Shown: positions 24 to 59,681 of the stretch, in pieces
Position numbering within the stretch: the first letter of the stretch is position 1
How the letters are laid out: each line of letters opens with the position of its first letter
Virus record (IMG/VR): IMGVR_UViG_3300046665_000548
Location: 1 to 64,000 of that record
DNA length: 64,000 bases
Reading direction: 5' to 3' (one strand)
Position numbers and translations under genes: made by a program
The notes under the pieces: model-generated
The model's input: the letters and a program-made list of their open reading frames with translations, nothing else
What the model was told of the DNA's origin: nothing
Databases searched by the model: none

Positions 24-164
24 ATGTACTTGTAGCTGCACCTCGCCCCTTTCATTGGTCTCGCTTCTGCGGGCGACCAGCTATATACGTATAACGCTCG
101 TGATCGGTTAATTCCGACGCGGGCGTTTTTTGTTTTTCATCGTACTATTGGAGATTGTAAATGA
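24..164 (+). other. Candidate amber-containing leader ORF (M-Y-L-UAG; 46 codons if read through)
   Basis: ATG TAC TTG TAG CTG CAC at 24-41; frame stays open to TGA 162-164, overlapping ATG 161; TATATT at 12-17 lies 6 nt upstream. Confidence 0.45.
93..137 (+). terminator. Intrinsic terminator/attenuator hairpin
   Basis: AACGCTCG...CGGGCGTT stem followed by a T-rich tract. Confidence 0.65.
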
Positions 165-553
165 GTTGGCTTGCCACCCTACTGGGTAGCAAGGCGAAGA
201 GCCTTGTCGAGCGTCACGAAGACGCTGAAGAATTTGAACAAGAAGATTTGGACGTTTGGGATTCCACCGACGATTACGGCTATGCGGATGACGAGATTAT
301 CGGCACCGAGGAGTGGGAAGATCAGAAAGGAATGGAAGACCTCAAGCGTTCTCTCAAGCTCAATGCCAAGTGGTTTCTGGTGAAGGTCGTTAATTTCAAT
401 TCAGGCACATTGGCCGAACAGATTGAATGGCTCACGGAAAACTGTGGAGGTCAGTACAAGCGTGTTGGATGGTCATCGGGCTGTTCAACGAAGGTCGGAA
501 TCGCGTTCGAGCGGCCGAACGATGCGTTCTTCTACAAGCTTCGGTGGCGTTAA
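161..553 (+). CDS. Hypothetical protein, FKLRW-ended paralog family
   Basis: GGAG SD; ends FERPNDAFFYKLRWR. Confidence 0.8.
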   Translation: MSWLATLLGSKAKSLVERHEDAEEFEQEDLDVWDSTDDYGYADDEIIGTEEWEDQKGMEDLKRSLKLNAKWFLVKVVNFNSGTLAEQIEWLTENCGGQYKRVGWSSGCSTKVGIAFERPNDAFFYKLRWR

Positions 554-828
554 TGGCAACCCAGATTTTCAAACCACAAAGTATGCGCATTCGCCCGTTC
601 ATGAGAAGGCATCTGCCGTCCATGTGGGGCGTGTCCAGGATATGCAGATTTCATCACAAGGTAAACCTGCGTACCGAGCATATAACCCAGGCTATGAAAG
701 AATGGATTGAAGAGCAGCCGGGATTCTATTATCGCAGTGAAGGCAACAAGGTTTTCTACTTTTCAGAACCTTCAGTTGCCTTGTTGTTCAAGATGCGTTT
801 CTTTGGAGATACTGATGAAAATCCCTGA
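553..828 (+). CDS. Hypothetical protein, FKLRW-ended paralog family
   Basis: ATG overlaps previous TAA; FSEPSVALLFKMRFFG. Confidence 0.75.
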   Translation: MATQIFKPQSMRIRPFMRRHLPSMWGVSRICRFHHKVNLRTEHITQAMKEWIEEQPGFYYRSEGNKVFYFSEPSVALLFKMRFFGDTDENP

Positions 829-1135
829 CGAGTGGAACGAGCACCCAGCGTTCGGTGAAGCTCAGATGGTTCTCGGGCCACTGGATATTCCGGCCGCTGA
901 GGAGATCGAAGGCTTTGATTACGGTGAAGACGATTTTCTATTGTTCCGCTGGAATAATAACGCAGTAACGATGATGTTCGAAGGCAATATGGTTGTGTCG
1001 ATATCCTATAGACACAAAGCTGCGGATGGTTCAATCACACGTTATGGAGCAGATTTCTTCATCACTGATCCTGTCCCACAAGTATTTTTTGAGAATATCA
1101 AAAAATCTACACTAACAGGCTTGACGAACAAGTAG
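815..1135 (+). CDS. Hypothetical protein
   Basis: GGAG SD before ATG 815; ends in TAG. Confidence 0.7.
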   Translation: MKIPDEWNEHPAFGEAQMVLGPLDIPAAEEIEGFDYGEDDFLLFRWNNNAVTMMFEGNMVVSISYRHKAADGSITRYGADFFITDPVPQVFFENIKKSTLTGLTNK

Positions 1136-1149
1136 AACCTCGCTAGCTT
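1121..1149 (+). promoter_or_regulatory. Sigma70-type promoter of the Pth2 operon
   Basis: TTGACG-N17-TAGCTT. Confidence 0.65.
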
Positions 1150-1193
1150 AACAATACACGAAGACAGTAACCAACTAAACCAAGGATATTCCA

Positions 1194-1625
1194 ATGTCGC
1201 TGTAGCTGCACCATCACATTGATCTAACGGCTCTCACCACTGAGGCCGAGAACGACCCCTATCGCTTGTACGCCATTGTGCGCGGCGATCTGGAAATGTC
1301 GCCGGGCAAGCTCGCGGCTCAAGCCGGACATGCCTATTGCGACGCGCTCCATGCAGCGCTCACTCGCGATCCCTCTATCCAACAGAAGTATTTCAGGGCG
1401 AATAGCTCGGGGACCAAGGTCACCCTAGTCGCGTCCTCCGAGTTCCGACTCCTTCGCGCATATCAAGACGCGCAGAAGGCCGGATTGCCGTGCGCTCTGA
1501 TCATCGATCAGCATCACGTGCACCCTCCACACTTCGACGGCTCACCCATCATCACGGCGCTCGGGATCGGTCCTGCGCGGCGAGCGGATGTGCACGCCAT
1601 CACGAAGCGGTTCTCCACTCTTTAA
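1194..1625 (+). CDS. pth2: Peptidyl-tRNA hydrolase, Pth2 family, with in-frame UAG at codon 4
   Basis: YAIVRGDLEMSPGKLAAQAGHA, KVTL and TALGIGP motifs; SD AAGGA precedes ATG 1194, in frame with ORF 1266-1625 through TAG 1203-1205. Confidence 0.85.
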
Positions 1626-1651
1626 CCCCTGAAAAACCAAAGGATAAGATC

Positions 1652-1930
1652 ATGACCAACGAAAAGACCTACACGTTCAAGTTCACCACCCGTGAAACCT
1701 ACCTCTCCTATCGCGCCGATTGGAAGGCCGGTTACGCCGATCTCGCAAAAGAGATCAGCGACCTCAAGCGCATCCGCGCAAAGGGCACTCAGTCAGAGAT
1801 GTCCGCCGCTCAGAGCAAGCTCCACTATCTGTCGATCAACGCGACGGAGATGCTGGCCGCACTCAAGGAAGCCAAGCTGGAGGCAGGCCGTCAGTGGGCT
1901 GCTTCCCGTGAAGATCGTGTGGCCGCGTAA
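1652..1930 (+). CDS. Helical hypothetical protein (paralog of N-terminus of 2268-2840)
   Basis: AAGGA SD; FTTRETYLSYRADWKAGYADLAKEI. Confidence 0.8.
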   Translation: MTNEKTYTFKFTTRETYLSYRADWKAGYADLAKEISDLKRIRAKGTQSEMSAAQSKLHYLSINATEMLAALKEAKLEAGRQWAASREDRVAA

Positions 1931-58012: not shown

Positions 58013-58049
58013 AATTCTCCCGAACAAAATTTGGACGTGGTTCGACACT

Positions 58050-58076
58050 CGGCCGTGAGGAAACCCTCACGGCCGG
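58050..58076 (-). promoter_or_regulatory. Stem-loop between gene 32 and uvsX
   Basis: CGGCCGTGAGG-AAA-CCCTCACGGCCG. Confidence 0.55.
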
Positions 58077-58103
58077 ATGCCTTCCAGTAGTGTGACTTAG
58101 ACC

Positions 58104-59093
58104 TTACTTGGTCGAACGCTGGCGCAGACGCTCAAGAATGTCCTGCGGGTTCGGCTTGCCTGCCGGAGCAGCAGAAGCAGTCGCGGCAGCCGGGGCGGCA
58201 GCAGCAACAGTCGGAGCAGACTCGGTAACCGGAGCAGCGGCCTTAGGAGCCGGAGCGGAACGAGCACCACCCTTCGGGGCTGCGTCGTCGCGATTGCCGT
58301 AAGGCTTCCAATACTGGCCGAACGAGGCCATATCGAAGGGCTCACCAGCAACCGAAGCTTCGAACGCCGCCTTGAGGGCTGCGAGTTCGTCGCTGTCCGG
58401 CTTGCGACCAAGGTATTCCTTGAGATCGTACAGGCCGTGCTCAGCGACAGCCGTCTGTTCGGTCTCGGTCAGGCTGCGGACCTTGAAGGACCAGGAGGAC
58501 GTACCATAGTTGGCGTATTCGCCCTTCTTCGTCTTGGTGATCTTGAAATCACGCCCACCGACGAAATCGGTCGGCATGTCTTCCATTTCCGGGTTGATCA
58601 GCGACTTTTCGATGATCTCGTAGATGGAGGGATTGATCACAAAGCGACGGATCGGGTTCTCAGGTGTTTCCTTCTCCTCGAAGGGAGAGTTGACCACGAA
58701 GCCCTGGAAAATGAAGCTCTTCTTCTTCCAGTAGGTGCGGGCCAGAGACTCCTTCGCCGGGTCCTTCCACCAGGGACGAGTTGCGCTGATGATCGGGCAA
58801 GTCATGCCCCACATCTCGACGCAAGGAACCTGGACGGTGACTTCACGGTCGGTCGGGTAATCGCCGCCCTCAACGCCCTGGAAAGGGAGCTTGATGACTT
58901 CGCGTTTCACCCAGAAGAAGGTGTTGTCGGGATCACGGTCGGGGAGGAAGCGCACTGTGGCGCTGGTGTCTTCAGGGATATTCCAGAACGCGTAGGAAGC
59001 GTTGTCACCACCGGAAGACTGGCGGTTGTTGTTGCCCTTAGACTTTTCTTTCTGTCCGAGGAGTGCAGCTTTGATTTCTTCAATAGAAGCCAT
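58104..59093 (-). CDS. 32: Single-stranded DNA-binding protein (T4 gp32-like)
   Basis: VRFLPD, FFWV, VPCVEMWG.TCP, YWKKKS, YANYGTS. Confidence 0.9.
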   Translation of the reverse strand: MASIEEIKAALLGQKEKSKGNNNRQSSGGDNASYAFWNIPEDTSATVRFLPDRDPDNTFFWVKREVIKLPFQGVEGGDYPTDREVTVQVPCVEMWGMTCPIISATRPWWKDPAKESLARTYWKKKSFIFQGFVVNSPFEEKETPENPIRRFVINPSIYEIIEKSLINPEMEDMPTDFVGGRDFKITKTKKGEYANYGTSSWSFKVRSLTETEQTAVAEHGLYDLKEYLGRKPDSDELAALKAAFEASVAGEPFDMASFGQYWKPYGNRDDAAPKGGARSAPAPKAAAPVTESAPTVAAAAPAAATASAAPAGKPNPQDILERLRQRSTK

Positions 59094-59192
59094 GATAATT
59101 CTTTGCCTTTCAAAATGCTTTGCTAGTAGTTGAAAAAGAGACGGCTCAATCCGTCACATTTGCCTGATCGATTACTAACGCAACCGATGTAC

Positions 59193-59198
59193 TATTTA
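59193..59198 (-). promoter_or_regulatory. T4-like late promoter core upstream of gene 32
   Basis: aTAAATA about 100 nt before ATG. Confidence 0.55.
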
Positions 59199-59372
59199 TC
59201 TCATAATGAGTAATTCGCTGCAATATTTTCAACATTGTTTAACGATTTTTGTTGGCTTTACTTTGAACCAACTTGGGACGGACATCTCGTTGAAGCGTCT
59301 TCCCATGTGATGGATATACACGTTCAATCTCCGGCCCCAAATATACTTTTTTGCATTTTCATAAATCAGATT

Positions 59373-59681
59373 ATGACTGAACAGCACTTCTGGCGTACGG
59401 GGCGATCTAGTAATACAGAGATGCCGTTTGTTGCAGAGCCAGTTCCTGGATCAACGCTCTGGTTTAAGCAACGGATCGCGCTTCAACGATGGTGCGTCAA
59501 TAATATCGGCGTTCAAGATGAACGATGGTCCGTACATGGGAACGCATTTCAATTCGCAAATGAGCCAGATTTGCTTCATTTCTCCCTAGCGTGGCAGGGA
59601 AGCGAAATCGAAAGTGCAGACGTGAAAATGGGCGACCCGGAGGTCGCCCCTTATTTCAACTTTAAACCTGGAACGCCTTAG
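59373..59681 (+). CDS. Hypothetical protein, FKLRW-ended paralog family
   Basis: RWCVNNIG...FANEPDLLHFSLAWQG. Confidence 0.7.
   Translation: MTEQHFWRTGRSSNTEMPFVAEPVPGSTLWFKQRIALQRWCVNNIGVQDERWSVHGNAFQFANEPDLLHFSLAWQGSEIESADVKMGDPEVAPYFNFKPGTP

Follow-up and report, generated by a model that had tools for sequence, protein, structure and literature searches.

What is encoded by the small open reading frames (ORFs) that recur, each with a similar C-terminal sequence, among the replication genes of a huge phage? The window, that is the whole stretch of DNA analyzed here, is the first 64 kb (64,000 nucleotides) of IMG/VR virus record IMGVR_UViG_3300046665_000548, which is 607,744 bp long with 51.7% G+C. 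Judged from their sequences, these ORFs of the window are paralogs that belong to a large and old family of small phage proteins, whose members have diverged strongly. The largest phages have much coding capacity that still lacks an explanation, and in the 608-kb phage about 8% of the genes (74 of ~880, a crude gene count) encode this one unnamed domain. Four or more further complete huge phages have similar numbers of such genes, and ~5,400 metagenomic clusters carry the domain. A name for the family would at once give an annotation to thousands of phage proteins now listed as hypothetical. It would also offer a testable handle on how the genomes of huge phages grow and how these phages deal with their hosts, and the question is open to experiment because cultured carriers exist (58 copies in Phosso, 3 in Pseudomonas phage PA5oct and its relatives).

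Family members and the C-terminal motif

The seed profile takes the last 70 residues of every ORF in the genome that has a strict version of the motif at its end. The hidden Markov model (HMM) built from it was iterated against all 8,337 stop-to-stop ORFs of at least 40 residues in the genome, and a significant profile match over a domain of ~55–75 residues defines a member. The iteration converges in four rounds on 74 ORFs with 75 domains, and the reversed-sequence control gives no match at E ≤ 10. Twelve of the 74 ORFs lie in the window, with E-values from 5e-5 to 1e-16; four more ORFs of the genome are borderline (E 0.009–0.04), all of them outside the window. The proteins are 65–260 residues long with a median of 100, and start codons are uncertain for several members. 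An earlier note, made from the letters of the window alone, had proposed about 13 paralogs and a genome-wide HMM count as a check. The HMM links 12 of the 13 ORFs it listed. The exception is 48735–49151 (plus strand), which that note had called weak; it has no sequence link to the others, with no family HMM match at E ≤ 50 and no PHROG.

The members are distributed over the whole window. At its left end, 161–553 (plus strand) encodes 130 residues and reads FYKLRWR before the stop codon (E 5.1e-12). An acidic N-terminal extension precedes its domain, and from the similar core sequence it looks like the counterpart of gp258 in Agrobacterium phage Atu_ph07. The ATG of 553–828 (plus strand, 91 residues from this ATG at 553; E 1.2e-10 for the ORF 427–828) overlaps the stop codon of 161–553 by 1 nt, and its motif LLFKMRFFG is followed by 6 residues. 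The weakest member of the window is 17852–18133 (plus strand, ~93 residues with an uncertain TTG start, end GFKLTFG, E 5.1e-5), which adjoins a peptide deformylase gene. Members 30339–30734 (131 residues, end MFKLVFG, E 1.2e-7) and 30091–30342 (83 residues, end FYKLRWG, E 4.9e-9) are the upstream and downstream genes of a tandem pair on the minus strand with a 4-nt ATGA overlap. The best-scoring member, 36620–36877 (85 residues, end HFKLRWG, E 1.2e-16), is preceded 8 nt upstream by 36886–37203 (101–105 residues, end LFRVFWG, E 6.1e-14), and both are on the minus strand. Three further minus-strand members are 41398–41718 (95–106 residues, end LFKLFWL, E 1.7e-9), 43789–44145 (118 residues, end LYKLTFS, E 1.3e-6), which lies just downstream of the UvsW-like helicase region, and 44136–44483 (109–115 residues, end EFKLRWG, E 6.9e-12), which shares a 10-nt overlap with 43789–44145. 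The last two are 53670–53957 (minus strand, 95 residues, degenerate motif LFWIRFKS at the end, E 6.2e-8) and 59373–59681 (plus strand, 102 residues from the ATG at 59373, E 6.9e-9). The latter ORF is open from 59235, and its motif HFSLAWQG is followed by a 24-residue tail.

In translation, the 12 ORFs share the C-terminal pattern [F]-x(3-5)-[DA]-A-x-x-[FY]-[KR]-[LIVM]-x-[WF]-[G]. The motif had been said to end the ORFs, and it does so in 10 of the 12 members; only 553–828 and 59373–59681 continue beyond it, by the 6 and 24 residues given above. The W-[LC]-x-x-N helix noticed upstream of it is a general feature, with W at column 30 in 93% of the domains. Other conserved columns are an aromatic residue at 46 (96%), F61 (85%), A67 (81%), F70 (88%), K/R71 (95%) and an aromatic residue at 74 (99%), and column 73 is R in 57%. 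Nearly all of the conserved columns (W30, aromatic 46, F61, A67, F70, L72 and aromatic 74) are aromatic or aliphatic, and the basic residue at 71 is the one strongly conserved position that is not hydrophobic. At the conserved F, A, K, L and R columns every synonymous codon is in use. The conservation therefore acts on the protein and not on a DNA element, because synonymous codons vary freely, and a DNA-level repeat or regulatory element at the gene ends is ruled out.

Predicted fold and known domains

One window member and one distant relative were modeled. AlphaFold2 was given the 77-residue domain of 36620–36877 with alignment A1 of 75 paralogous domains, and it returns a model with a mean predicted local distance difference test score (pLDDT) of 85 and a predicted template modeling score (pTM) of 0.70. 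In this model the shared C-terminal domain of ~65–75 residues is compact and has the order β1-α1-β2-β3-α2, with a strand at residues 11–15, a helix at 19–33, strands at 46–53 and 56–63 and a final helix at 66–76. The last two blocks are predicted best, with pLDDT of 94 (strand 56–63) and 93 (helix 66–76). In the predicted layout both helices pack against the same face of a three-stranded sheet. The second model is that of P0009, a metagenomic two-domain relative (alignment A3), which shows the same element order in both halves. Its pTM is 0.51, the linker is disordered and the mutual placement of the halves is uncertain. The small α/β scaffold suggested in the earlier note is thus what the models give, once in the window member and twice in P0009.

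In the model, W-[LC]-x-x-N lies in α1, F-x-F in β3, and D-A-x-x-F-K-L-R-W is α2. The full motif F-x-F-x-x-x-D-A-x-x-F-K-L-R-W-G would thus correspond to β3 and the terminal α2, that is to the hydrophobic core and a helix cap. The same note had taken the motif for a conserved docking tail, and this part does not hold. The conserved A, F, L and W of residues 66–76 are mostly core, and the motif is predicted not to be a free docking peptide because it forms the confidently modeled, buried C-terminal helix. Variation falls on the solvent face of α1, the α1–β2 loop (0 to ~25 residues), β2 and the N-terminal extensions. Beside this, the stop codon almost always comes one or two residues past the last helix, in most members as well as in 115 of the 149 best database matches. 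This strict stop is accounted for by none of the explanations tested.

The domain matches no described family. Pfam-A, PHROGs v4 and NCBIfam contain no family for any member, those of cultured phages included; the scans give scattered single matches at E > 0.002, with no family common to two members. None of the 75 domains has a Pfam match to RRM, and no RNP or ligand-binding motif is seen. No known domain was found fused to the longer members or to long relatives, and no description of this domain family was found in the literature. Among structures, Foldseek has no match in the Protein Data Bank (PDB) at E ≤ 1e-3. With VIA-align, run exhaustively, there are neighbors at Z 4.6–6.6 with a root mean square deviation of 2.0–2.8 Å over 56–63 residues, and the best Z of 6.6 is below the background of 7–8 stated for the tool; only from a Z of about 8 does a match tell more than a widespread arrangement of elements. 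Split β-α-β domains (ACT, RRM, the N-terminal domain of V-ATPase subunit a, secretin N domains and designed ferredoxins) have the same element order and likewise place two helices on one face of an antiparallel sheet. The phage domain differs from them in lacking the fourth strand and any sequence or profile likeness. With three strands only, a chain that ends after α2 and a structural match at background, we reject the ferredoxin-like/ACT/RRM superfold as its assignment. The profile search of PDB sequences gives a potyvirus coat protein as its best match (PDB 9r9z chain Aa 127–206 against A1 19–74) at E 0.28, which we judge to be chance. This coat-protein region shares a curious pattern, W-C-I-E-N-G...W...F-S-D-A-A-E-A.

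In BFVD the model matches many uncharacterized proteins of uncultured Caudovirales phages (best template modeling (TM) score 0.79, E 5e-5), as well as Atu_ph07 gp258 (A0A2L0UZT1) with a TM score of 0.65.

Evolution and distribution of the copies

The members are spread over the genome at 52 places. Fourteen of these are clusters of 2–4 members and the other 38 are solitary, so that the tandem pairs pointed out in the window, four in number, are part of a genome-wide arrangement. Neighboring members often abut or overlap by a few bases, often with overlapping stop and start codons. Moron-like units with their own terminators can be set aside, since no excess of terminator-like hairpins is seen next to members (3 of 54 upstream, Fisher p 0.21). 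Two members outside the window, 233971–234591 (L009) and 247927–248262 (L010), lie directly downstream of apparent tRNA 3′ ends with T-arm-like sequences.

The copies are very divergent from each other, with a median paralog identity of 20%. Adjacent pairs are 19.7% identical, compared with 20.3% for all pairs, and only three pairs, at 49–60%, are recent duplicates. Recent tandem duplication is thus ruled out as the origin of most pairs, and the tandem pairs are either old or assembled from separate copies, because adjacent copies are no closer than others.

A JGI contig from a close relative (L029) is syntenic with a region of the window and contains orthologs of five members. They are 61–68% identical with nonsynonymous divergence (dN) of 0.21–0.35, and the ratio ω of dN to synonymous divergence (dS) is 0.10–0.16 in four of the pairs; dS is not estimable for the fifth, and all ω values are approximate because dS is saturated. 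The identities are 61% for 30091–30342, 67.5% for 30339–30734 (ω 0.16), 68% for 36620–36877 (ω 0.11), 67% for 36886–37203 (ω 0.12) and 65% for 43789–44145 (ω 0.10). For 20 neighboring genes the median identity between window and contig is ~86% and dN ~0.08. Purifying selection on the family genes is clear, and they belong with the faster-evolving genes. By element, ortholog identity is 88% in α2, 72% in β3, 71% in β1, 60% in α1, 59% in the α1–β2 loop and 50% in β2. This agrees with the suggestion that N-termini and surfaces vary around a preserved core.

Copies are also gained and lost between the two relatives. Members 41398–41718 and 44136–44483 are absent from the syntenic places in the contig, and the contig has an extra member elsewhere. 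At the first of these places a block of ~850 bp is missing from the contig. It contains 41398–41718 and the minus-strand ORF 41715–42248 (177 residues), which has no family match, and it lies between the UvsW-like helicase gene and a DUF4326 gene. The block looks like an insertion or deletion cassette.

Outside this genome the family is almost phage-only. A profile search of 1.84 billion proteins, clustered at 50% identity, matches 5,413 cluster representatives at E ≤ 1e-3; the top two matches, P0007 and P0008, are repeat-protein artifacts and not members. The motif is present in 129 of the 149 best matches, which have a median length of 88 residues, and in 115 of these it lies at most 10 residues from the C-terminus. 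About 30 of the best 150 matches are two-domain proteins. In the ESM Atlas the neighbors are unnamed clusters that are 88–100% Viruses, one of them with 4,872 members. The motif pattern, searched with the narrower alignment A4, gives nothing confirmable in 185,579 prokaryote species at one genome each.

Copy numbers in other genomes are counts of uncurated profile matches. Three complete IMG/VR phage genomes of 436, 462 and 465 kb have 70, 70 and 63 matches, and the cultured Sinorhizobium phage Phosso (469 kb) has 58. With the 74 ORFs of the present record, there are 58–74 copies per genome in a clade of 430–610-kb phages. PA5oct and its relatives (~287 kb) have 3 matches, as does Atu_ph07 (490 kb). 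RaK2 (346 kb), CcrColossus (280 kb) and phage G (498 kb) have none, and T4 (169 kb) has no credible match, its one hit at E 0.009 containing 7 in-frame stops. In tblastn searches of GenBank phages with single members, two queries give no match, and a third gives two weak ones, which led to Phosso and Cassandra. By profile and predicted structure, Atu_ph07 gp258, PA5oct EST35_0274 and EST35_0275 and Phosso gene products 475–479 are true members; these and the members from uncultured Caudovirales are annotated only as hypothetical. An unrelated smaller phage contig (L057, Logan SRR10842860, 121,751 bp, 59% G+C) has ~16 members within 1–20243, mostly head-to-tail. Most of them end in R-W-C instead of R-W-G, and the run adjoins NAMPT and NadR-like NAD salvage genes.

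The phages of the clade with the expanded family probably infect Alphaproteobacteria. GcrA is an alphaproteobacterial protein, and this host is proposed because the window encodes a GcrA homolog and relatives grow on Sinorhizobium and Agrobacterium.

Function of the copies and genomic setting

The reading that we favor, at a probability of roughly 40%, is that the copies act inside the cell as a repertoire of binders or inhibitors, directed at proteins of the host or of rival phages. They would be soluble, non-virion proteins. Each copy would use its variable surface to bind a different one of these targets, and probably to block or redirect it, and the copies together would form a host-takeover or counter-defence repertoire on one stable scaffold. 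Such a repertoire is in line with the fast evolution and the turnover of the copies, with their restriction to viruses and with their mostly acidic charge (56 of the 74 members acidic, 14 basic, median isoelectric point 5.6). A more specific form of it is that the 430–610-kb clade keeps a library of 58–74 binders, each with a surface against a different host defence or housekeeping protein. We consider this form rather doubtful; if true, it would be the largest such gene family, for counter-defence or host takeover, known in any phage. If each copy does bind a target of its own, the scaffold would deserve attention as a small binding module of natural origin.

Several known systems resemble the family in part. 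With small anti-defence and takeover proteins of phages, such as anti-CRISPRs and T4 early proteins, it shares the small size, frequent acidity, restriction to phages, fast evolution, patchy distribution and a place among early or replication genes. Such proteins are usually single-copy and do not come as 60–75 paralogs on one scaffold, and no member matches a known anti-defence family in Pfam, PHROGs or NCBIfam. SUKH polyimmunity loci contain tandem divergent paralogs of a small scaffold and are read as a repertoire against diverse protein toxins. The phage family resembles these arrays in its tandem divergent paralogs; the SUKH proteins are cellular and have other folds. Among phages, Bacillus phage G has a lineage-specific expansion of a small zinc-ribbon protein to ~35 copies (Iyer et al. 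2021, PMC7824862). There too one small domain is multiplied tens of times in a single giant genome and its role is guessed from context. The present family differs in its β-α-β-β-α order without zinc ligands, its 58–74 copies and its presence in several huge phages.

A number of observations weigh against a binder repertoire. The members have no enriched upstream 7-mer and hence no shared promoter of this kind, and sigma-70-like sites are not above shuffles in the single stretch scanned, 29–46 kb. An early, host-takeover expression class is therefore unsupported. The fast evolution is not specific to the family, because several other neighbors (w38265, the DnaJ-like gene and w39607) evolve equally fast. 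Nothing on function follows from the PDB neighbors of the fold, which are generic (Z ≤ 6.6). Finally, K/R71, the sole strongly conserved polar residue, may indicate one common ligand rather than many targets.

The last point leads to the alternative that the domain binds one common ligand through a conserved face made of K/R71, R73 and the aromatic residues. Candidates for the ligand are a nucleic acid, a nucleotide signal and a conserved hub protein of phage or host. The copies would then be adaptors or regulators that differ only in when and how much they are made or in their N-terminal cargo. In favor of such a face, column 71 is basic in 95% of the domains and column 73 is R in 57%; α2 is the most conserved element even between orthologs, and the stop right after it in almost all proteins hints at a constrained, shared end. 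RRM and ACT, which bind RNA and small ligands, are among the structural neighbors at Z 4.6–5.9, yet neither they nor any other domain gives a profile match. Fourteen of the 74 members are basic, but three quarters are acidic, contrary to a general affinity for nucleic acids. Most conserved residues are hydrophobic, with a predicted place in the packed helix, and 60–75 divergent copies are hard to explain by dosage. We regard a single common ligand as unlikely.

Obligate pairing of neighbors is compatible with any of the other readings. Adjacent or fused copies would be homo- or heterodimers joined through a free sheet edge, and the pair would be the functional unit. The predicted fold lacks the fourth strand of ferredoxin-like domains, and its best structural neighbors include designed edge-strand heterodimers. 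The 14 tandem clusters with their often overlapping stop and start codons, and the two-domain fusions that make up ~30 of the best 150 metagenomic matches, point in the same direction. However, 38 of the 52 places are solitary, and the P0009 model (pTM 0.51, disordered linker) has no confident interface. Complex prediction for the tandem pair 36620 and 36886 gives a score of 0.01, which speaks neither for nor against binding. Obligate pairing seems improbable to us.

Still less probable is a role in the virion, as internal head, decoration or ejected proteins with different paralogs filling different structural niches. Huge phages have very complex virions (93 virion proteins in PA5oct; PMC7318152). 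The members are scattered genome-wide and some are near structural genes: 59373–59681 adjoins the virion-structural-protein homolog 59678–62119, and members of Phosso lie near a tail-fibre gene. However, in PA5oct the adjacent members EST35_0274 and EST35_0275 lack the electrospray ionization tandem mass spectrometry (ESI-MS/MS) virion note that the flanking Clp protease and MazG have, a comparison drawn from annotation notes on two members in a single phage. Most window members stand among DnaB, primase, UvsW, UvsX, gp32 and tryptophanyl-tRNA synthetase genes, and gain and loss between close relatives is rare for structural proteins.

That the copies have little specific function, as a stable mini-fold spreading by duplication and recombination and tolerated in roomy huge capsids, is very unlikely: they are small, have no known functional motifs, come and go between relatives, are most concentrated in the largest genomes and differ in number between cultured relatives (3 in Atu_ph07 and PA5oct, 58 in Phosso), but ω is ~0.1–0.16, individual orthologs are kept in synteny at saturated dS, paralogs of ~20% identity all have the full core and intact frames, and ~5,400 clusters are maintained across many phages where neutral DNA would decay.

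The large genes of the window form a T4-like replication and metabolism module. It includes genes for a DnaB-like helicase (24288–25742), a primase (25742–26824), the UvsW-like helicase (42248–43702), a RecA/UvsX-like protein (56924–58048) and a gp32-like protein (58104–59093), and one part of the large terminase subunit also falls within the window. Several cell-like functions are encoded as well: a ClpB-like AAA+ chaperone (11501–13711, plus strand), the peptide deformylase (Pep_deformylase, 17104–17577, plus strand), a DnaJ-domain protein (32619–33239, plus strand) that is only 48% identical to its ortholog in the syntenic contig, tryptophanyl-tRNA synthetase (33519–34520, plus strand), an NMT1-like substrate-binding protein (37255–38358, minus strand) and a radical-SAM protein (46464–47846, plus strand). 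The GcrA-like cell-cycle regulator is at 54534–55139 on the minus strand (Pfam E 1.3e-16). Nucleotide likeness to GenBank phages is confined to the ClpB stretch and is weak, with Atu_ph07 as the top match.

No recoding is evident, since TAG ends ~16% of the genes in a crude call and table 11 gives the genome a coding density of 90%. The whole genome has 57 tRNA genes. Two adjacent ones on the plus strand of the window, 4091–4178 and 4180–4256, have the anticodon CUA of the amber-suppressor type (labeled Pyl by ARAGORN), and a tRNA-like gene with a four-base anticodon is reported at 1944–2020 on the same strand.

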